DNA from: Dicyema japonicum
Lineage: Eukaryota > Animalia > Dicyemida
Length of the DNA stretch: 64,000 bases
Assembly: GCA_011109175.1 (NCBI GenBank)
Contig: RDEW01000015.1
Span: 514,310 to 578,309 of the forward strand
Direction of reading: 5' to 3'
Shown here: positions 3,950 through 56,970 of the stretch, piece after piece
How positions within the stretch are numbered: position 1 is the stretch's first letter
How the letters are laid out: each line of letters starts with the position of its first letter
The notes under the pieces: model-generated
The model's database searches: none
What the model was told of the DNA's origin: nothing
What the model saw: only the letters and a program-made list of their open reading frames with translations
Made by a program: the position numbers and the translations under genes

Positions 3950-5439
<1,490 letters not shown>

Positions 5440-10429: not shown

Positions 10430-12193
10430 AAAGCAAGGGATCACATCAATCTTGAACGAATAAAGACACTTTGCGCAAGGTGCATCATCTCAATCATCCG
10501 ACCAACCACGTGGTTAGCATGTCTATTTACTGGAATGACAGATATTATTTTGCTAGGAAAAAATTAATAGAATTTTCCAGCCTCATATCTGCTGAAATGT
10601 CTAATCAGGGATGGAGCATGCACAGACACCTTTCTCATTCAAAGTCATCGGATTCTCTTACCTTCACCAAATCCTATGATGCGTTATTTATAGGTTTCTC
10701 TGAGTACTCCGCGATTCATAACGTCCATCTCATCATACTCTTTGGGCTCAAACTCCACAAAATCTATGTAGTAGTTTAGCAGCGAAACAGCATACTCATT
10801 TAATGCTAGGAACAAATTCCTTGCATTTAGAGACGTCTTACACAATAACGATGCTCTTTTACGGATGCCTTCAGTAATTTGTCGCTTTGTCTCAGGCATT
10901 ATAAGGGACTTTGGAGTTTCGGTAACACCCAGATACTTATATTTTTCGTGTTCCTCTAGGAATCTTACTAACTCTTTACATACTTGCGTGTTATTCGCAG
11001 ACTTTGAATAATTCAAATCTAGCCCTATACTCTCAAAGAATTCCCTGGCACAGACCCCCATGGAGTAGAGCTCCTCGGCTGTTCGATCATACATCTTCAG
11101 GTCATCGATAAAAATAAGGTGATTTGTACTGAAACAAACCCCCTCACAATGAACTGGTATTTGCTCAAACCGGTCATTGAGGCGGCGACTCAATGGCTCC
11201 AAACAGAGAACAAAGAGCAGCGGAGACATGCTAGGTCCCCCTCTTGAGTTTTACCTCGCCTATCCGGTGCCTATTATAGTTCAGATGAATACTCTACCTA
11301 TTCATCACAGCCACTACAAAGCTGATGAACCACACAGGCATACACAGATTGTGTAGGCACTCGACAAGGTAAGAATGATCAACTGAATCGTACGCCCTCT
11401 TCACATCCACCCACATAGACAAAAGTGAGTTTCCGTGAAACATAGAAAAGCACTTGTTGATCAAAGCCTGCTCTTTTGCCCCCTGACAATTTCGCACAGT
11501 CCCAACTGATTCTCGGAGAGAATCCCATTTGTTCTACAAAGCTCCTGACCTCATTAGCCACCAATTTGGTCATCATTTATATAGGGTTGGCATGCAGGTT
11601 ATCGGTCGATAATCTGCAGCAGACTGAGGGTTGTCCAGCTTTGGGATCAAATAAGTTGTCCTTGTGCAGGGCCAATCAGGAATCGTTTCCAAATTAGTGA
11701 TGCTTTTCTGTAATACACGACACATAGACTAGTGCAATGAAGTGCATCTTTTGATAAAGAAATTATAAACTTTATCGATCTCGAGCGTTTCCAATCAGGA
11801 GATGTCTCACTTTCGCCTCAAATTTTTTGCGAAATCGAAAATTCCGCAAGATTCCGCCAAGTAAGGAGCGGCGCTGTACGGGACATTCCACGCATTTCCT
11901 CTGAGTGGTTTAGCCTCCCACATACTACCCCATGTGGAAAGCATTTCCGCGTTGCTGGGAACAACAGTATGGCCATTTTCGTGTAGGCGACGGTAAAACA
12001 ATCTGCGATTAAACTCAAACAGATTATTTTCTCTCCTTCTCTTACACCGACTTTCATGTGTATAGAGTTTCCTCTTATACACCATTATTGCCCCCTCTAA
12101 CTCCACCTTTGCCCTCCTCAACTCTTTGAGGTCCCATTTGGGAACACGGAGTTTACTAATTAGCCCCTTTACTATAGGCTTTTTAATTAACAC
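10430..12193 (-). mobile_element. R4/Dong-like RLE LINE, decayed RT region
   Basis: RRLFYRRL, CQGAKEQALIN, WVDVKRAYDSVDH, SPLLFVL, TNHLIFIDDLK, YKYLGV, LNARNLF; same family as 18985-22560. Confidence 0.85.
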
Positions 12194-12364
12194 TAATTTA
12201 ACAAATTTTATTATAACTGGTTTTTAAATTTTAATTTTTTTTATAAATAACTTACTTTATAATAAAAAAATAATTTATTGAATTAATATTTGATTTCTTC
12301 AATATATAAGCGTAACCATAGCTTGAAATTAATTTGCTCACTTCACAATTAAATATCGACAAGA

Positions 12365-14952
12365 ATGCCTTCTGCAGGGGGAATATCACCACCAACAATT
12401 ATTGCATTAAAGTCTTCAGGAGTCGTTCCTGGAAATAGAATCGATACTGATACCTATATAGAGATAACAACAGGTATTTCCGCTCATTTCATTTATAGAA
12501 AGCAGGGGGTGTAAATTATACTTTACCACCGACGGGACCAAGCCAACCCCCTTCAGTTTGATAGCTGGAATGAAGAACACGACCCACAAGTATTCCGCTC
12601 CTTTCACAATGAGAGCAGGAAATAGGATTTTGAAGGCAATTTCTATTAACAAGTAAAACTCCGTGTATAACGTAGATCTGACCACCGTGAAAGTGCTGTA
12701 GTTACTCGAAATTATAAAGTAGTCGAATCAAAGTCATCAGAAATTTCGTCGGACTCGGAATTCCTCGAATCCGATGATTACATGATGGACTACAGAAAGA
12801 AGCCTACAAGACCAGTATATGACGTCATATTAGTAATAGTGCACAAGTCAGAAAAAGGATAACAGAACGACTCACGACGACAGTTACTTCAAAAATTCCC
12901 GCCAAATCCAGGTCCCTGAGAGGGAAAAATGTGGAAAATATATAATTTAGCTAGATTTAGTGGTCAGACCTAGTACCAGCCACGAGATTCCCCATAACTC
13001 TATCAACTACAGCGGAACCCAAATCAACATTTGGGGACAAACCCCTCAAAGTACGATCGAGGACATTTCTCATTGTTTTGGAAACAAAATAAACAAAAAT
13101 CAGCAAATGTTTGGGGCGAACCAATCCGGGAATTTCAACGGCTATCTCACGGAGGAGATGCTAAAAGTTACTCGTCGCCTAAACATTAGAGAGCCGAAAA
13201 TAACCGACTTTTGACTGTCGGAGATCTCAAAAATGCCCTGAGAAGGCAGCCCCCTCAAATTGAGGAGATAAAAGAAAAGGTCCCAATTGAATACAAAGAA
13301 ATGAGTGACCCTCCCATTTCGAACAAAAGTCCAGGGAACGGTATATTCGACAAGTCACGGAATTAGGTGATTGGAGAGGCCAACTAACACACTTATATGC
13401 ACATTTGACTACTCACGCTAAATTATATCCTGAATTCCTTGGAGATCTGAGTTATGCTAAATTTGGGAGGGTATCTTGAGCAATAATTTTCACAGATAAA
13501 CGATGCTGAGTTGGTGAAGACAGACGAAGGCTATCAACTCTCAGTGCTCATCGAAAATGCGGGTTTGAATCTCTTAGAAAATTTAGCCAAACCATTTGTG
13601 CCCCCCAAAAAACCTGAGAAAAGGGTGGTTAAGATCGATCCATCTCCAAAAGTCGAGCCCTCCTCCAAGCCACCAAAGGAAATTGTAGAATCCACCAACA
13701 AAACCAAATCTTCAGGTTACACACGTGCGAATCAATTTCTTAGTGATTCAACCAAAAAAGCCCGTCCCTAAGAATGTCGAGCCGTACTACATGACTGAGA
13801 ACTACGAGGGAGCTTTAATATTTCATTCCTAGCAATCAGGGACAGTCGTGGGGGTGGACGATTTGAATCCTGAACAGGATGCCTCTGTTTTACGGAAGGC
13901 AATGAAGGGGATAGGTATTAGGGGATTTCAACCCATAGGGACCGACGAGAAAGCGTTAATCAACGTGTTGTGCAACAGGACGAATATTCAGAGGCAGAAA
14001 ATAGCGGCAGAGTACAAATCAAGCTACGGAAGGGTATTTCACTCAAAATCACATTGAAGGACCTGAAGGAAGATATTCGGGGGGAAACCAGCGGAAACTT
14101 TCGAAATGTGTTGCTCGGTCTTCTGGAAGAGGGGGTTGAATACGACGCGAGGCAACTTAATAAGGCCATTAAAGTCGGTTTCTGTTTCACTTTGTAGGGC
14201 CTGGGAACTGATGAGGATGTTTTGGTGGAGATTATCTGCACGAGAACCAGCCAGCAGCTTGAAGCCATAAAAATGAGTTACGAGAAAAGTATTTTGTCTG
14301 TGAATCCTCAGTGTACAAACGAACATTGGAAAAAGATATTGTCGACGATACCAGTGGAGATTTCAGAAGGATAATCGTATCCCTTCTACAAAATAAACGA
14401 GAAGTGGGGGACACCTATGATTTGTTTAGTCAATCCCTTAAGACTTAGAAACAAAGTTAAAGAAGATGTGACAACTCTTCAAAAATCAGGAACTGGAATA
14501 TGGGGGACCGATGAGTCAGTTTTCAACAAAATAATAGCGAACCGATCATTCGCATATCTCCGAGCACTTTTCGAGGAGTACCTCAAACAAACAGGACATC
14601 AATTTGAAGACGTGCTTAAACAAGAAATGAGTGGGGACCTTCTCAAAGCATATTTGGCCATAGGTATCGAATATATGTTCATCTTAAAGTTCAGTGCATT
14701 GATGATAAGCCCGGGTTCTTTGCTAAAAAGTTATCAGATGCGATGAAAGGGCTCGGAACTAAGGACGACACATTATTGAGAATTATTATCTCAAGATGTG
14801 AGGTGGACATGGTTCAAATCAAGGAGAAGTACCACATATTGACTAATAAGAGTCTCACTTTAAGTGTAAAGGTTGTATTTAGGGAATCAATCCATTAGGG
14901 GGAAACAAGTGGGGACTACCAAAATTCTCTACTCACCTTAATTGGAAAATGA
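12365..14952 (+). CDS. DZANK1-like N-terminal domains fused to a four-repeat annexin core (729 aa, 17 exons)
   Basis: Introns: 12474-12498, 12653-12675, 12815-12839, 12931-12954, 13167-13189, 13341-13366, 13471-13495, 13716-13743, 13809-13832 (GG-AG as assembled), 13915-13938, 14034-14059, 14174-14197, 14289-14311, 14424-14448, 14664-14689, 14872-14898. Removing them leaves 2190 nt = 730 codons in one frame. N-terminus MPSAGGISPPTII…LYFTTDGTKP…HKYSAPF…ILKAISI and SPGNGDWRGQLTHLYAHL…PEF resemble DZANK1; C-terminus has MKGIGTDE, IKGLGTDE, WGTDE and MKGLGTKD annexin repeats. Confidence 0.8.
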
Positions 14953-15069
14953 TATTATACTCCTAACATATTATTCTTAAACTAACATTAATAATATTAA
15001 ATATTATAACTTTTTACAAAATTGTAAGAATTTACACAAAATTATTGGTATAACTCGTTAGAATATCTG

Positions 15070-15270
15070 GAGCCAGATACCATGGTGGTTAGTGCTGTCG
15101 CTCAACTAGCGATTAGCTGTGAGTTCGATTCTCACACCGCTGCCTATGCCTTAACCAAATCCTATGAGGCGTAAGTGGATCCATCTATCTCAGGAGACGC
15201 TCAATGCTTGGTTGGCATCGAAAGAGAATGTCTCTCTTCCCTACTCCATTATGACGGATATGAATGGACG
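15070..15270 (+). mobile_element. tRNA-headed SINE carrying the family B core
   Basis: A-box-like tggtggttagtg and B-box gagttcgattctc, followed by tggatccatctatctcaggagacgctcaatgcttggttggcat (family B core). Confidence 0.7.
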
Positions 15271-17269: not shown

Positions 17270-18560
17270 TTATTATTACCCCCAGGATCACTGGATCAAA
17301 GAGAAAGAAATAAAAGTTCTCATCTAACTAAGTGATCCCAGACCGACAAAGATGAGGACGAGTCCGGCGGGGTCGAGAATCCTGAACAGCTCTTCTCATT
17401 GGACATGGCAAAAATTTCTGTATGATTGTAGATAATTCGATAGTATTTGGAATAGAGGGCAGCTCGGTAGAATAGCCTCCTTTAATAGTTTCCGTTGTAG
17501 TTCGATTAAAAAGTTTTCAATGGGTTGGATATTGTGATCTGGTCCAATTAACTTTATTGCAGTCTCCTCGATTGCAGATAATTTCAATGAGGAACATTTG
17601 CATTTGTTCCCATGAAGGACTTGCATACGTCATCGTTGGTCGGATAAATTGTTTGTAGATCGTGGCACAAACACCAGTTTGATCTCTAAGTGATTTTGAG
17701 AGCACTTTTAAAATTCTCATTTTTTTCAGAGCAGAAGTTATTTTGTTTCCAACATGCTGGATAAAGGTGAGTCCCTGATCAAAGGTTACTCCCAGAATCT
17801 TCGGTGTTTTGTTAATAGAGATAGCTTCGTTCTTCATAAAGACTTTTGGTTCGATACAGAGCTGTCTCTTGTAGGTGGTAAACAGTGTGAAAAAGGACTT
17901 TGTTGCTGATGTGTCGAGTCTCCGCTTCGAGAGCCATAGTTCCAACTTGTCTAGCAGTTGTTGAGCGGATTGAGTCGCTGATTGAATGCTTCTGTCCTTG
18001 GAGGCAAGAATGATATCGTCGGCATAGGAGAGGATTAGACAGTTTTCATTACAGGTTTGTGGCATGTCGTTTATGTAGAGATTGAAGAGTTAGAGTGATA
18101 ATGGGGATCCTTGAGGGACTCCATTTGGGAAATAGCGAGATCTTGATTTGATGTTGTTGCAGAGAACTTGTACTCGTCTTCCATTTAGAAATTTCCAAGC
18201 CAAAGTTTCAGGTTCGGATGGATGTTGGTTTCAAATATTTTCTTTGTATGGAGTGTCCTAGGGACTGAGTCGAACACTTTTGTGATGTCCACGAATATAA
18301 GTACTGTCCTCTGATGGGGTTTGAGGGAGTTAAATTCTTCCGCAATGAATTGTTGAGGGTTGTGAGCTGCGTTGTGGTCGGATGGTTACCCCGGAATCCG
18401 TGCTGGGTCGGAAGTATTGAGATTGAGTCTTTTACTTTTTCCAAAACAAGCCTTTCAAGGATCCTTGAGACCGGACTTGAATAGATATTGGGCGATAGGA
18501 AGATGGTTCATCTATTGGTTTGTTGGGGTTTCGGATAGGTCTGATTAGAGACATTCCATA
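17270..18560 (-). mobile_element. I/Jockey-group LINE (family C), RT and 3' tail
   Basis: QHGFRGNH, GVPQGSPLS, SYADDIIL, TPKILGVTFD, YKQFIRPTMTYASPSW. Sister copy at 61950-63270 with the same 3' tail. Confidence 0.85.
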
Positions 18561-26044: not shown

Positions 26045-27059
26045 CTATTCAACGAAGCATGACCTTTTCTACAAATAATCACACAGACTAACCGGTTTAC
26101 TTGCTAAGGCTGGATCCCAATGCACCAAATTGTGCCCATCAGAGGAATCCTTCTCCTTATAAATCTCATGGCCCATTGCTGATAGTCCGGGCAATTCGGG
26201 CTTAACAACATTCATAACAAAGCTGATGGCCTTCAACAGCTGGGACTGTTCATACATCACACTGTTATGGTCAATCTCATATTCCGGGGTCACTTTCCTC
26301 ATGAGGACAACAAAAACAGCACACGTCAGAACGGAACGGCGGAATTTGACTGAACCCCCATCCAGTAGCACATGGACCAACATCTTTGATCCTTGGACGA
26401 ATTTATACTCCGAAAAATCAGGGATATTCAAATCATTTGAAAAATAAGACTGCAGCAACAGTTTTAACCAAAGAATGGGGGTGGGAATCGAGATGTACCA
26501 GTTTAGGGAGACCAAAATCCTGATCTCCATTCTCACTATATCCCCAGGACCGAACGTGTTAGCTGTCATCTCAGCGTACTCATCGATCGAACAAAACTCC
26601 ACAGACTCGAATTTTGCGGACACAAACAAAGCTGATATTCCAACGAGTTGTAGTTGGTCGCTCTTCAAGCCAGCTGCATCATCGTTGGAAAGAAAACGGT
26701 CTACAATGTCGATAGAGAGAAAAAAGACCTCCCGATCCAGTTTCATCATATCACATACCTAAATAAGTTTATAAAGTAACTTCAACGAGCCATTTTAAAA
26801 GCTTGATGCGCATTGAATCAGTTATACTGGTGGCCTTTCTCACAAGTTTTGAAGGGGTAAAATAATCCTTTTCTGATTCGAGCCAGGAAGGGGAAAATTT
26901 CGTAAAGTTTGACTTTAACTGTCGCTTTGTAGCTTTGATGCCTCTTTTTTGAGGATAAATGTTTTCTTTATCCTCATAAATGCTTGGAAGATGATCATTC
27001 GGCTTCAAACGAGAAACATAAGACTCTGAATTTGAATCTCGAAGTCGTAGAGGTGACAT
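26045..27059 (-). CDS. A/B-type cyclin (about 322 aa)
   Basis: Cyclin box MRIKLLKWLVEV…FLSIDIVDRFL…LQLVGISALFVSAKFE; KEN box (DKENI). Introns 26759-26780 (22 nt) and 26069-26092 (24 nt). Confidence 0.9.
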
Positions 27060-27305
27060 TTTATGCCTTAGAATAATATTTACGATGACTTACATCTTAT
27101 AGTTTACTACTGGAATTCTCAAAATAAAAAATGTACCACAAGGATACTCATTGATTTACGTAATTTAACGCGCTTAAATTAAATTGGTTTACCAGCTGAT
27201 ATTATTAATTTTTTAATTATTATATATAATAATTTAATTATGCTCATAAGAATGTATTTGGCGAAAGTCTATAGCTTAAATTTATATGTGTTAAATTAAT
27301 TCGGG

Positions 27306-30569: not shown

Positions 30570-33067
30570 ATGGTGGTTATATGCAAAGTGGAAAAAAGTC
30601 AAAAGGGGAAAATTTGGGCCTGTAAACCTCAGCCTGAAAATAAATATGGGTTTCGGTAAACTTAAATGAATAAAGGTGTCTCTTTGAGATTATTTCTCGT
30701 GGGAAAATCGACAGAGACATAAATAGTTTTCGCAAAATTTCAATAAATCGGTCTTCGAATATTTTAGCGGCTTTTGACTCAGCAAATAACCTTTTTATAT
30801 TCGACCTTGTCTCAAACAGGTCTTTGCTTATATAATTCAAGATATTATCACGCTTTAACGTCCACCTCTAAGTTTACAGCATTACACGTGGACCAGGACA
30901 AAATAATCACTGGTTGCGATGATGCGAGCCTCAAAATAATCGGAATCCATACTGGAAAGGAAATTGTCACTTTTCGGGGGCACAAAGCAGCAATTCACTC
31001 AATCAGAGCTCACAAAACTGGCTTATTTGCTGTGAGCGTGTCTTCAGACTGTGCGTGCTTCTTGGATTTGAATTCTTTCTCAAATTCTCGGAGAATCAAC
31101 ATAGAGGGGGATGAAGAGTTAATCGATGTAAGGAGTCTTATGCATGGTAGGTCATGTTCTCAAACAACTGGTGGACTATTTTGGCTATATTCAGGGACAA
31201 CTCAATTCAAGGAATCTCCGTGGAGGACGGAAAGGTGAACTTCCGACTCCCAACCGAGCACGTGAAAGATTCGGTATTCAAACATTATGTAGTTTCAAAG
31301 TAAATTGGAGTTTGTCAGAGTTTAGAGATGGAAAATTACTTGCTGTTTGTGGAAAATCCCAGACTGCATATTTGTTCTCTCTTGAGACTCACGAACAGAT
31401 ATACACCACTAAAGGAAGGTCGGGGACAATTATTGGCTTGCACTTTGCGGAGTGGAAGATCAACGATGTAAACTCACAGGTTGAGTGTTGATAATATGCA
31501 GTTTTTGCTTCTATTTAAAACGGGGGATGAAATAACTCTCCTGAATACGTCTTTGTGGGAAGAAAAAACATTAGAAAACGTGTTCGGGCACAAATCAGTC
31601 ATGCAATCTATTTCTCTTTCTCCTCATCTTCTCTGTTCTCTCACATACAGCGGCTCAATATTAATCTTTGACTTCAAGAAAACTGTCCTCAAACTCAAAA
31701 AAGTATTTGTTTAGTTCACTAAGTTATTAAAATTCGAACAAACTCCCAAAATCGTGTCAAAGGCCCGGATCTCCCCGAAACGGAATCCAAAAGGAGCACC
31801 CAAAAGGCAAAAAGAATCCTTAAGCAGAGACAAACTACGCCTTCTTCTGAAGCCCTACAATGCCTATCCGAGCAAATATAGACTGTTTATATGGAAGAAA
31901 CTTCTGAGACTCCCAGAAAACTACGAAGCTTATTCGAAGTTGGCGGAAAAGGGTGTCCATGACAGTTTTAAAGAAATCGAAAAACATTTTCCGATCAAAA
32001 ATGGAAAATTACTGCGCATTTTCAAGAAGTTGTGATTGATTTGATTCTCAGAGTTATGTCGGCCATAGCTCACTGGTCCCCAGTTTTGGCATCTTCTGAA
32101 TTCGTCCCTCATATAGCCTTTCCATTCGTGATATTATTTCAAAACAATCATATGACATGCTTTGAAGCCGTGGTCACTGTCCTCGGTAAGCCTATATGAT
32201 CTGATTAGTCCCTCAGTAAACTGGTGTTCCTCTTGGTTCGATTTCCTCCCAGTTGCCCCAATAAATATTCTTGGAATCGTGGAGAACTTGTTGATGTTCC
32301 ACGACAAGGAGCTCATCCAACATTTTGTTTGGAATAACATCACAACAGAGGTCACATTGTCATAAATTTCAGATTTATGCCTGGACATTGATGAGATCGT
32401 TTTTCACGGAGGTGTTCACACGGGAGCAGTGGATTCAATTTTTTGACCACGTGGTTAGTCAAGAGCCAGAATTTTTGTTGTTTTGCGTTATTTCCTACTG
32501 CATCATCAGCCGACGACCACTCCTGAACATGTACCAGCGAGGGGATTTCATGGTAAAGCATTCATTACACATTTAGGCATATTTTCAGCAACAGAGGGAA
32601 ATCGACGTGACTCGTGTAATCAGCGAGGCACAAAAGGCTTCTGATATCACCCCTTCAGATATTCATCCACGTGGATTTTTCAAGCCATTTAGTCCCCTGT
32701 CAGTTGGAAATTATCAAAAACTAGACATAAACCCACAAGCGGTCATCGATTATAACGTATTTGTATAATTTTACTCTACAAGAATAAAGAGAAAAATCGT
32801 ATCCAAAATGAGGGATTCAAGTTAAAATGAAACAAATCCTTAATTTTTAGATGTAACGGAGAAGATCAAGTGACTACAGATGAGCAGTCGGAAGAAGAGG
32901 ACGTTTCAATAGGAAAGCTATTGAACAGCTGTTGGTATAATTCGTTGATTTGTGTAGTTGCCTTCCATAGAGAACGATTTGATGCCCAAAATGCGGGACT
33001 GATGGAGATTTCCCAGCTGAGACAGCGATTTATAGACGATAACAATCAGTATAATATAAATCAATAA
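30570..33067 (+). CDS. TBC1D31: TBC1 domain family member 31 (WD40 + TBC; WDR67)
   Basis: Spliced start GKIWACKP; WD40 FRGHKAAIHSIRAH; RLLLKPYNAYPSKYRLFIWKKLLRLPEN; FPVAPINILGIVENLLMFHDKELIQHF. Multiple ~22-30 nt introns; TAA at 33065-33067. Confidence 0.9.
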
Positions 33068-39050: not shown

Positions 39051-39216
39051 AAATTTTTCATTTCATCATATTAAAATTTTGACTACGAATGTTTTGTAGA
39101 CCAAATTAATGATATAGATAATTAAAAAAATAAAATATAAATTTCACAAAAATTAATTTAAATATTTAAATCCAATAACAACAGCGTGGTTAATTTAATA
39201 GACGTAGTTGCTAAGA

Positions 39217-41123
39217 ATGTCCCTACGAGTTCCAGTTCCTCCTGGTTTAGAAAGAATGCTTAAGCAAGGATCCCAGGTATTCCTTCCAATTCATCACTGT
39301 ATAGCGGTACACTGGCCTTGAAGAAGGAGTATACAGAAATATAGAGGCCTGCATTGAAATGGGAAAGTATATAACCTCCACCTACGGACCCAACGGTAAA
39401 TGCCACGTATCATGGTAGGTCGGAGTAAAATGGTGATAAATTACCTCGAGAAACTCTTTGTAACCTCAGACGCTTCAACAATAATCAAGGAACTGGATAT
39501 TCAGCATCCTGCCTGCAAACTGATTGTTATGGCTGTACAGCACCAAGAAAGAGAGTGTGGAGACGGAACAACTGCGGTATTTCTACTGACAATCGCCTTA
39601 CTTCAGAGGGGAATGTCCCTACTGCGCTCAGTTTTGTTCTGTTTTAACCAAATAAGGGACTACCACTCAAAATGCTCATATCAGGGTACCAAGAGGCCAT
39701 GGATTTCATGCTGAAGACCCTGCCTGAGTTGGTAGTGGACTCTGTCGTGGATTTGAAAGACAGGAACGCAGTTGTTAAAGCCATAACATCTCCTATCTGC
39801 GCAAAACAGTGTGGATTGGAGTCCTTTATCTCAGGATTAGTCTTCGAGGCTTGCTGTAATTTTAGTTGATATAAATTAGCCACTATTCTGCCATCCTCCG
39901 GTTCGTTCTCCGTCGACAACGTCAGAGTCTGCCAAATTTTGGTATTTTTTCGTGCTTAAAACCCGCAAAGGGGAATGGCTTGCATTCATCTCATGTGGTC
40001 AAAGGAATGGTCTTCAAAACAGTCCCTGAGAGTTCCGTGGTGGAGGTCAGCGGGGCTAAGGTGGCGATTTTCACTTGTGCCTTCGACATTGGTCACACAG
40101 AGACAAAAGTGAGCATTCTTATTATGTCTAGGGGACCGTTTTGATAAAAACAGCTGATGATTTGATGAATTTTAGTAAAAATGAGGAGAATTTGATAGAA
40201 AAGGTATTAGAATGTTCTAATTTTAGCAAATTCAAGAAATTGTCTCCTCTGGATGCAACGTAGTGGTTTCTGTGGGAAAAGTCGGTGACATGCACAGACA
40301 TTTTGCCAACAAGTATGGACTCATGCTGGTGAGGCTCACAAGCAAGTTCGACATCAAACGTCTCTGTTCGGTAACTGGAGCAGTCCCAAATCCACGGATA
40401 GTATTTTTTGTGGTGACCCAAGGTTCCATTTGATCGAAAATCGATGGGAGTCTGTGATTTGGTGTATTTCGACGAGATTGGAAGCACTCAGGTTGTCGTC
40501 TTTAAACAGGGTTGATTTGTGACTGTCTTACGGGTAGATGCTGAGGACAGTTTGGTGTCAACTATTGTTTTGCGAGGGTCTTCTGATCACATGATGGTGG
40601 ACTTGGCAAAGGCTTTCGATGATGGGATCAACGCTGTCAAAATGTTAACCAGAAACGGTGACTTGTTACCAGGAGGCGGGGCTGTGGAGTTGGAGCTCGC
40701 TCACAGACTACAGTTGCTATCTAAGAATTGTCCTGGAGCGTTGGAAGAGGCTTCATTAGCTCTTGTGAGCTTAGTGAGGCAGATTGGTGAGAACGTGGGA
40801 GTTAATGGAACTGAATATGTGAATAAAGTGTTTGGAGAACATGTGAGAGGGAATCAGAATTACGGAATTATTGTTGAGGTTGGTAATGTTATGAATGTGT
40901 AGGGAGATTCTCTAAGTGTTAGTGATGTTGTGCAGGCCAATTTGTTTGACTTGTATGCTACCAAATATTGGGTTATTAAGAATGCTCTGGCGACTGCTAT
41001 TAGTATTCTTAAGGTGGACGAGGTTGAATTGTTTTTTGAGTGTAGATTATTATGTCTAAACCTGCGGGTGGACCAAAGCCAAGGGAAACGGGGACCAATG
41101 CTGTTAGAGATGAAGACGATTAA
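39217..41123 (+). CDS. CCT8: T-complex protein 1 subunit theta
   Basis: MSLRVPVPPGLERMLKQGS|…GLEEGVYRNIEAC; YGPNG; VTSDASTIIKELDIQHPA; ECGDGT; IVLRGSS; LLPGGGAVE; IIMSKPAGGPKP. Tiny introns; the acidic C-terminus needs +1 nt near 41097. Confidence 0.95.
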
Positions 41124-54759: not shown

Positions 54760-56970
54760 ATGAGTCAGCATTCCACACAAGTACGTTATTATCTTTATTA
54801 AGAATTTTGAATCCACTGGAGATGAGGAACTTGATAAATCCATATCCAACTGGTTTCAGTGGAATAAAGTTTTCTGCACTTTAAATATAGGAATACAAAA
54901 ATAATGACGAAATCACAAATCTTCTGAAAAATAAAAATTTCGATGAATTAAAGAGTCGCATGCTGACAAGACTTTCATTCGGGACTGCAGGTTTCCGAGA
55001 CAAAATACATTTAAGGAATTCGTGGGAGGATGGAAGCCGGATTTGGACGTTTTAATCAGCTGACCCTCATTCAAATTTCTCAGGTTGATCCTTAACCTGA
55101 AACAGGCCTTAGCGGAGCACATTGTCAAGTCATATTCTGACCAAGACCGCAGAAGAGTGGTTGTGGGTTTCGATGGAAGACATAACAGCCAAAAGTTGGA
55201 CTTCTCTTTATTTGAGATTCGCTCAATTGGTCGTCGGGGCCCTTAGGAGGGTAAATATAAAAGTGTTCTTTTACAACAAATGTGCCCCGACTCCTTTGGT
55301 TGCATTCGGTGTCCGCTATTTCAAATGTTGCTGTGGTGTCATGATCACGGCCTCCCACAATCCAAAGTGGGACAATGGATTCAAGCTGTTTTGGGAGTGC
55401 ACAGCACAAGTTTTTTCTGAAGTTTAATTCCAGGCGGAAAATGAGCATGAGGACGCCGTTTTGGAGGAAATGCAGAAAAATCCTGTCCCCGTGTCATTTT
55501 TGTGGGATACGACCAATGTGGATGATGATTCCTCAGCGGTGGATGAGGCATTCAATGCTTATCTTTTGGAAATGGAAAAGCTGAACTTTTACAAGTTAGT
55601 ACATGAATTATTGTGGGCATGCATCCATCTTCTTACCAAACATCATGTACACGGCAATGCACGGTGTGGGAACTCCCTATGTCCGTGGTTTGTTTGACCA
55701 TATGGGATATTTGCTCCTCCCTTTTCTTGGTTGATGAACAAGTAATTGATTTTTCGATTTCTTAGTGTGAGATCGATCCCGAGTTCACAACAGTCAAATC
55801 CCCTAATCCGGAAGAGAAGGCTTCTCTGGTATGTGGTGTCTATATCTCAGGAAATGGCGACTTTAAGGGCTGATAAAATGGGGATTAGGCTTGTTTTAGC
55901 CACTGATCCAGACGCGGATAGATTAGCCGTCGCGGAAAAACAAAATGAGTAGCTTCTAGCATTATTTCAGTGGAAAGTGGATGATTTTCACGGGAGATCA
56001 GATCGGTACTATTCTGGCATGGTTCCTTCTGCATTGCCGTCGCCAGTTTACTTACTCTGATAGTATTTACCTCACTTAGTCGATTTTAGTTCAAAACACG
56101 TGCATGGTCTCTAGTGTGGTGTCTTCCAAATTCATAAAAACCATGTCTAATGCAGAGGGGTTCATTTTCCACGTGATTTTTTTAATTATTGTCTAGGAGA
56201 CTCTGACTGGCTTTAAGCATATAGGGAACAAGTGCAATGAGCTGTTGGAACAGAATCACTCAGTTCTGTTGGCCTACGAAGAAGCTATTGGTATGATTCA
56301 TGACCTAAATTGAGGATTCATGTGCAATTCCACTATTTTGGACAAGGACGGTATCAGTGCTGCCTTGGTTATCGCCCAAATTGCTGCCTTCCTCAAAGCC
56401 CATGAAACAAATTCTCTGTTGAATGACCAGCTCGAGCGATTATACAACAAATATGGGAGACACGTGACCTCAAACTCGTATTTTATGTCACCTTCTGGGG
56501 AAGTGACGTCCCAACTGTTCAATGATCTCCGAAATTATGGCGGGGAGAATAAGGTATATGATTGGCTTTATTTCAGTACCCAAAGTTCTGTGGTCCGTAC
56601 AGTATTAAGGCTGTTAGAGACCTCACTACAGGATTTGATAGCAACTATGAGGACAATCAGGCGGTTGGGGGAGTATTTTAGTTTTAAGGTTCTCCCGCTG
56701 AGTCTTGTCTCACAAATGATAACCTTTTATTTTGAGAATTCCATTACTGCCACTATAAGGGCGAGTGGGACGGAACCGAAGATCAAATTCTACGTTGAGT
56801 ACATTGGAGACCCTGTGATGAAGTTTTAAGGCAAATATTATTTTAGTGGATTGGAAGAATTTGACGGAAAAGCCGAAGATGCCAATATGAGGGCTAGTCT
56901 GGCTGGATTTCTGGAGATTTTTGTGGACCAATTCTTTAGGCCTGCATATTATGGATTGAAGCCACGTTGA
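54760..56970 (+). CDS. PGM2: Phosphoglucomutase-2 / phosphopentomutase
   Basis: Spliced RLSFGTAG|IRG; catalytic GVMITASHNPKWDNGFK; LATDPDADRLA; YEEAIG; ILDKDGISAA; IRASGTEPKIKFY; ends GLKPR* (TGA 56968-56970). Many 22-30 nt introns. Confidence 0.93.

Follow-up and report, generated by a model that had tools for sequence, protein, structure and literature searches.

DZANK1 is a poorly understood ciliary-base protein that has been connected with vesicle transport in photoreceptors and with the transition-zone doublet surface. The human protein, which binds the LC8 light chains (DYNLL1/2), is found at basal bodies and on microtubules, and its interaction with NINL maps to the ZNF_RBZ zinc fingers at residues 244-317 (PMC4617706). 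A DZANK1 dimer together with an LC8 dimer was assigned to the outer A-tubule surface of the bovine transition-zone doublet (2026 preprint, bioRxiv 10.64898/2026.06.11.731632). The classical annexins (A5, A3, A4 and each half of A6) carry four PF00191 repeats behind a short N-terminal tail of 10-20 residues. Here we describe a locus of the dicyemid Dicyema japonicum where DZANK1-like and annexin sequences fall into one open frame once a series of micro-introns is removed. It lies at positions 12365..14952 (+ strand) of a 64,000-nucleotide (nt) stretch of contig RDEW01000015.1 (GenBank assembly GCA_011109175.1), called the window below, and all coordinates refer to this window. The sequence suggests that the locus is one transcription unit, which probably encodes a single DZANK1-annexin fusion protein of about 720-730 residues.

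In this predicted protein about 416 in-frame residues of DZANK1-like sequence and linker stand before the annexin core, where a classical annexin has its short tail. It resembles annexins A7 and A11, whose core is placed behind a long, proline-rich and probably flexible N-terminus governing partner binding and localisation. However, the N-terminus of A7 and A11 consists of low-complexity Gly/Tyr/Pro sequence and is not a folded domain taken from another family, in which it differs from the dicyemid protein. The features that favour the fusion are a strong intron 8 between the two halves, coding-like Pro/Lys sequence before the annexin ATG, and the lack of a promoter-like island at the junction.

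Gene model and identity of the two halves

The coding unit runs on the + strand from ATG 12365 to TGA 14950-14952 and is divided by 16 micro-introns into 17 exons encoding 730 amino acids (aa). The model was built by a shortest-path search, and every junction was then curated by hand. Very short introns were reported for the published D. japonicum genome, together with 36.7% GC and 49% repeats (PMC6736024), and introns of ~25 nt have been reported among animals only for dicyemids and myxobolid myxozoans (PMC13644364). The window itself has a GC content of about 36-40%, contains many retroelement remnants, and its genes are interrupted by ~25-nt introns. An earlier note on this DNA had proposed a single 730-codon frame with 16 introns of 23-28 nt. 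The frame stood, and 15 of the 16 introns are canonical GT-AG introns of 23-28 nt, but the remaining one, which had been placed at 13809-13832, starts with GG. The earlier observation as a whole was partly confirmed, in that the domain identities and the frame hold while one junction intron is either non-canonical or long. The domains and the canonical introns of the unit are the following.

12365..12652, + strand: Fn3_assoc / CHB_HEX_C_1 beta-sandwich module, exons 1-2, detected by Pfam and PDB searches and corresponding to DZANK1 residues about 10-87
13367..13470, + strand: exon 7 with the conserved DZANK1 helix motif DWRGQLTHLYAHLTTHAKLYPEF (residues 286-320), detected by a PDB match
13833..14952, + strand: annexin core of four PF00191 repeats, exons 10-17 (Pfam E 2e-5 to 1e-15)
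12474-98, 12653-75, 12833-57, 12931-54 and 13167-89, + strand: canonical introns 1-5 (GT-AG)
13341-66, 13471-95 and 13716-43, + strand: canonical introns 6-8 (GT-AG)
13915-38, 14034-59, 14174-97 and 14289-311, + strand: canonical introns after the second junction intron (GT-AG)
14424-48, 14664-89 and 14872-98, + strand: last canonical introns (GT-AG)

The N-terminal half was assigned by Pfam scans of exons 1-3 and 5-8, run exon by exon, and by a search of 177,635 PDB sequences. Exon 2 matched CHB_HEX_C_1 (PF13290, E 9.3e-8) and Fn3_assoc (PF13287, E 3.8e-7), and its best PDB match was residues 42-86 of DZANK1 (11xu_G1, 752 aa; E 0.0083), so that the N-terminal Fn3-associated/CHB_HEX_C-like module proposed in the earlier note was borne out as a domain shared with DZANK1. 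The internal motif WRGQLTHLYAHL..PEF, which the earlier note had also ascribed to DZANK1, was recovered in exon 7. There WRGQLTHLYAHLTTHAKLYPEF pairs over 32 aligned residues with DZANK1 residues 480-511, the helix WRxQLxHxxAHL..PEF of the human and bovine proteins, and this was the sole PDB match of the exon at E up to 10 (11xu_G1, E 0.47, 14.3 bits). PDB entry 11xu, to which this DZANK1 chain belongs, may be the structure of the 2026 preprint. Although each of these matches is modest, the descent of the N-terminal half from DZANK1 is convincing, because two short exons independently pick the same PDB protein and do so in matching order. The two conserved anchors are about 245 residues apart in the dicyemid protein and about 438 in DZANK1. 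The exon 7 segment yielded no candidates in protein libraries and no meaningful match in an atlas look-up, and exon 8 with its read-through tail (91 aa) had 0 matches among 1.84 billion protein representatives.

Both the double zinc ribbon of DZANK1 (ZNF_RBZ, 244-317) and its C-terminal ankyrin repeats (595-681) are missing from the dicyemid protein, as the earlier note had claimed. There was no CxxC in the 730 residues, only two Cys occurred in residues 1-416, and Pfam gave no zinc-ribbon match on exons 1-3 and 5-8; the short exon 4 (24 aa) contains no Cys. No Ank match was obtained at E up to 1 on exons 8 and 9, and the 3' end is annexin. When the zinc-ribbon and ankyrin parts were sought in the flanking DNA, only reverse-transcriptase remnants were found. 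Since the flanks contain just this debris, the zinc ribbons and ankyrins are truly absent rather than overlooked. The C-terminal third of DZANK1 is replaced by a Pro/Lys linker and the annexin.

The annexin half displayed all four repeats. Repeat 1 (exons 11-12) matched PF00191 with E 3e-11 and 2e-5, repeat 2 (exons 13-14) with 7e-9 and 1e-5, repeat 3 (exon 15) with 1e-15 and repeat 4 (exon 16) with 1e-13. In alignments to repeat 3, exon 15 also matched annexins VI, III and V (E 1e-38 to 1e-22); in annexin V the aligned residues were 170-237 (E about 1e-22). Predicted type II calcium sites are present as KGIGTDE..GETSG in repeat 1, KGLGTDE..DDTSG in repeat 2 and KGLGTKD..GETSG in repeat 4, each with an acidic residue ~38-40 residues downstream, while repeat 3 has the usual annexin variant IWGTDE..QEMSG. 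This pattern is shared with the classical annexins, which carry K-G-x-G-T-D-E loops with an acidic residue ~40 downstream in repeats 1, 2 and 4 and W-G-T-D-E in repeat 3. The four repeats of the earlier note therefore stand, as do its intact GxGT sites for repeats 1, 2 and 4, but not for repeat 3. An intron after 'YGR/K' is shared with the classical annexins of other animals, and the segment of exons 10-11, when compared with protein libraries, matched only annexin exon fragments of other animals (52-59% identity). Judged by these motifs the annexin core is intact and ordinary. Both halves are thus what the earlier note had taken them for: the N-terminal part derives from DZANK1 but lacks zinc ribbons and ankyrins, and the annexin core is complete.

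The junction and the boundaries of the unit

Whether the two halves form one protein depends on a short region around intron 8, for which the relevant features, together with the boundaries of the unit, are listed here.

12171..12320, no strand: promoter-like 5' boundary, an AT-rich island before the ATG with a GC of 0.17 or less
13600..13790, + strand: basic Pro/Lys-rich linker by composition, about residues 355-409, split by intron 8
13716..13743, + strand: intron 8 (GT-AG, 28 nt; splice-site score), shifting the DZANK1-like frame into the annexin frame
13769..13771, + strand: TAA reached only with intron 8 retained, ending a 411-residue DZANK1-like protein if two genes are present
13791..13793, + strand: in-frame ATG; the 'GTV' motif of the annexin follows nine codons later
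13812..13832, + strand: second junction intron, GC-AG of 21 nt as drawn, with a GT-AG alternative at 13776-13832 (57 nt); it skips the in-frame TAG 13830
14941..15055, no strand: AT-rich island with ATTAAA (14996) directly after the stop, 3' boundary

Intron 8 was scored with a splice-site matrix trained on the other 14 canonical introns, the 55 exonic GT..AG pairs of 21-29 nt serving as pseudo-introns. It scored 12.6 and ranked third of 15; all 55 pseudo-introns scored 8.8 or less. A matrix refined iteratively across the 64 kb degenerated into noise and was discarded. Once 13716-13743 is removed, the frame upstream of ATG 13791 is open through exon 9 into the DZANK1-like exons, and the peptide across the junction reads ..KTKSSVIQPKKPVPK.. 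in the spliced model.

The sequence that is brought into frame by this intron resembles coding sequence. The codon-usage score of 13746-13790 in the spliced frame was 1.71, compared with an in-frame mean of 1.89, and was reached by only 5% of off-frame windows. The 15 codons between intron 8 and ATG 13791 encode IQPKKPVPKNVEPYY, in which Pro and Lys make up 47%, close to the 44% of the exon 8 tail and far above the 14% of the whole protein. When every frame of both strands is counted, only 0.04% of the 15-codon windows in the 64 kb were as rich in these two residues. The linker contains 13 K+R against 6 D+E, and A/C-rich DNA is alike on both sides of intron 8 and ends at ATG 13791. The Pro/Lys-rich linker of the earlier note thus agrees with the composition of the exon 8 tail and exon 9.

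The second junction intron is less regular. Because no GT occurs between 13794 and 13829, TAG 13830 can be removed only by a non-GT donor or by a GT-AG intron of 57 nt. The non-GT choices are GC 13812 (21 nt), GG 13809 (24 nt) and GA 13806 (27 nt). The canonical 57-nt intron 13776-13832 also takes out ATG 13791, and the product would then have 718 aa. The position of the acceptor at 13832 roughly matches the start of annexin exons in other animals. ATG 13791 is the probable ancestral annexin start and a possible start of a separate annexin. Whatever the gene model, an annexin expressed from this ATG depends on a non-GT donor (GC, GG or GA) in a micro-intron. We infer that the junction introns are removed in vivo.

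The two AT-rich islands bracket the unit and none lies inside it. At the junction the GC content is 0.38-0.48, in agreement with the earlier claim that no AT-rich gap separates the halves. Each of the three start codons checked, those of this gene, TCP-1 and the cyclin, has an island within about 110 nt upstream, and ATG 13791 has none for 1.4 kb. In this genome such islands could be signs of promoters or terminators. Neither AATAAA nor ATTAAA was found between 13772 and 14167.

One gene or two

The claim of one DZANK1-annexin protein made in the earlier note is favoured by the junction intron, the linker-like coding sequence and the island pattern, but the fusion is not demonstrated and one junction intron is odd. 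The fusion can be made fully canonical by using 13776-13832, while an annexin translated alone from ATG 13791 cannot do without a non-GT donor, which favours the fusion. Several observations weigh against it. The four read runs spanning the locus, which date from 2019, are genomic DNA, with Nextera adapter ends and contigs that are collinear with introns and flanks and have no joints, a run search confined to 'RNA-Seq' libraries listed none, and the protein libraries contain no protein from this locus (queries with exon 7, exon 8 plus tail, and exons 10-11). ATG 13791 lies exactly at a normal annexin start (MTENYEG-QSGTV..), and the upstream frame closes cleanly at TAA 13769 if intron 8 stays. 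The second junction intron is either non-canonical (21-27 nt) or twice the length of every other intron, and in the latter case its GT donor at 13776 is weak, since 25% of exonic GTs score equally well. As to the N-terminal half, its likeness to DZANK1 is carried by the two short exons 2 and 7; exons 1, 3, 5, 6 and 8 showed no DZANK1 similarity in the PDB search, which covered exons 1-3 and 5-8 of this half. An echo of PKKP/VEP motifs between exons 8 and 9 was not significant by itself, and the composition argument alone was kept.

The same sequence could be read as two tandem genes on the same strand, which we regard as unlikely. The upstream gene would be DZANK1-like, with 8 exons and about 411 aa, retaining 13716-13743 and ending at TAA 13769-13771, and the downstream gene, an annexin of 4 repeats and about 321 aa, would begin at ATG 13791, have a GC (or GG/GA) donor in its first intron, and be expressed from a promoter inside the upstream gene or from a polycistronic precursor. 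This arrangement fits the clean TAA of the unspliced frame and the ATG nine codons before 'GTV', as in stand-alone annexins such as annexin A5; the intron after MTENYEG, about where the annexin exons of other animals begin, fits as well. However, the genes would be separated by just 19 nt without an AT-rich island, in contrast to the three start codons that were checked, and no AATAAA or ATTAAA is present in 13772-14167. Two genes would further demand that the best-scoring non-training GT..AG pair of the locus is a chance look-alike, that the 15-codon stretch with 47% Pro+Lys, exactly in the frame of this look-alike, is also due to chance, and that a non-GT donor is obligatory. If there are two genes, the locus is still unusual for their 19-nt gap on one strand and the obligatory non-GT micro-intron. 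An improbable variant is one transcription unit with two products, the fusion when intron 8 is spliced and a short DZANK1-like protein ending at TAA 13769 when it is retained; the annexin may also arise alone from ATG 13791 by internal start or re-initiation, and the fusion could then be the minor form. If the 28-nt intron 8 is retained, a stop follows 26 nt later, which leaves both forms readable, ATG 13791 is kept in frame, and inefficient splicing of ultra-short introns was reported in Microsporidia (PMC13644364), but the sites of intron 8 are strong and argue for efficient splicing. It is very improbable that only the annexin is functional, with a decaying remnant of a DZANK1 pseudogene upstream of it and the long frame as an accident of permissive intron picking. 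The loss of zinc ribbons and ankyrins, and the lack of a detectable homologue for five of the seven upstream exons searched, would be in line with decay. Yet roughly 390 codons are open across seven canonical 23-26-nt introns with good sites, the most conserved DZANK1 motif is intact, and the start codon lies behind an AT island as in other genes. The single unit with one fusion protein is thus the reading that we consider probable.

Proposed function and surroundings

Under the fusion reading the protein would have three parts. The first, residues 1 to about 354, would be derived from DZANK1 and keep the Fn3_assoc beta-sandwich and the helix WRxQLxHxxAHL..PEF, having lost the double zinc ribbon and the ankyrins. 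Next would come a flexible linker, basic and rich in Pro/Lys, with a length of about 55-60 residues, and the third part would be the complete four-repeat annexin core with its calcium-site motifs. Such a protein would probably have originated when a DZANK1 gene minus its 3' half was read into the first exon of a neighbouring annexin gene, with ATG 13791 as a relic of the old start. The DZANK1 module would dock on microtubules of the ciliary base or transition zone and the annexin core would clamp acidic phospholipid membrane when calcium rises. The protein would then act as a tether between microtubule and membrane, switched by calcium, at the base of the numerous cilia that dicyemid cells bear.

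The earlier note had instead proposed an adaptor for NINL/dynein ciliary transport. That proposal has lost its main support, as the ZNF_RBZ fingers that bind NINL are absent here, and because of this absence a tether between microtubule or ciliary base and membrane appears to be the better reading. Cross-linking in mammalian multiciliated cells has located annexins at the base of cilia (PMC13082021), and the peripheral cells of dicyemids are densely ciliated and endocytic (PMC6736024). By a more speculative and rather doubtful extension, the surviving DZANK1 part (beta-sandwich and helix) would be the microtubule-seated part, wired to a calcium-dependent lipid binder in a single chain that links microtubules to the ciliary membrane, and the locus would be a 'Rosetta stone' for a membrane-proximal role of DZANK1 in all ciliated animals. 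By pattern alone, the string YSGTQINI (residue 183, 12933-12953), which weakly resembles TQT, is a putative LC8-binding motif.

In the literature searched nothing was found on Dicyema and annexin, DZANK1 was not linked with annexins in this sense, and the supplements of the Dicyema genome paper held nothing on annexin. If the fusion is true, it would provide independent evolutionary evidence that the N-terminal module of DZANK1 works beside membranes, and it would reveal the NINL-binding zinc ribbons and the ankyrins as dispensable parts. An annexin with a borrowed folded targeting domain would also widen the known range of annexin N-termini, and the locus would be a clear example of gene fusion during dicyemid genome reduction.

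The gene is flanked by retroelement remnants, and the other host genes of the window were identified by Pfam on open segments.

10687-12223, - strand: RVT_1 reverse-transcriptase remnant, LINE-like, flank of the gene
17520-18507, - strand: RVT_1 reverse-transcriptase remnant, LINE-like, flank of the gene
4837-5436, + strand: tubulin (Pfam)
26072-26758, - strand: cyclin (Pfam)
30768-31235, + strand: WD40 protein (Pfam)
39400-40899, + strand: TCP-1/CCT chaperonin subunit (Pfam)
56314-56826, + strand: phosphoglucomutase-like gene (Pfam)

In the whole 64 kb there are 30 short islands with a GC of 0.17 or less, including 39086-39185 and 27171-27265. ARAGORN and Rfam made no call at 15060-15135, just downstream of the gene, where a tRNA-like string (..GGTGGTTAGTGCTGTCGCTC..GGTTCGATTCTCACACCGCTGCC-like) is probably a tRNA-derived SINE. 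The four DNA runs agreed with the assembly at TAA 13769, ATG 13791 and TAG 13830 and differed from it only at 13201, 13490, 14421 and 14472. At 13201, where the assembly gives T, all four runs have C, a synonymous difference (AAT to AAC) that stems from the assembly or the strain. Around intron 1 (12449-12509, about 12479) all runs show a small bubble of alternative contigs, which probably reflects a heterozygous position rather than a splice form.

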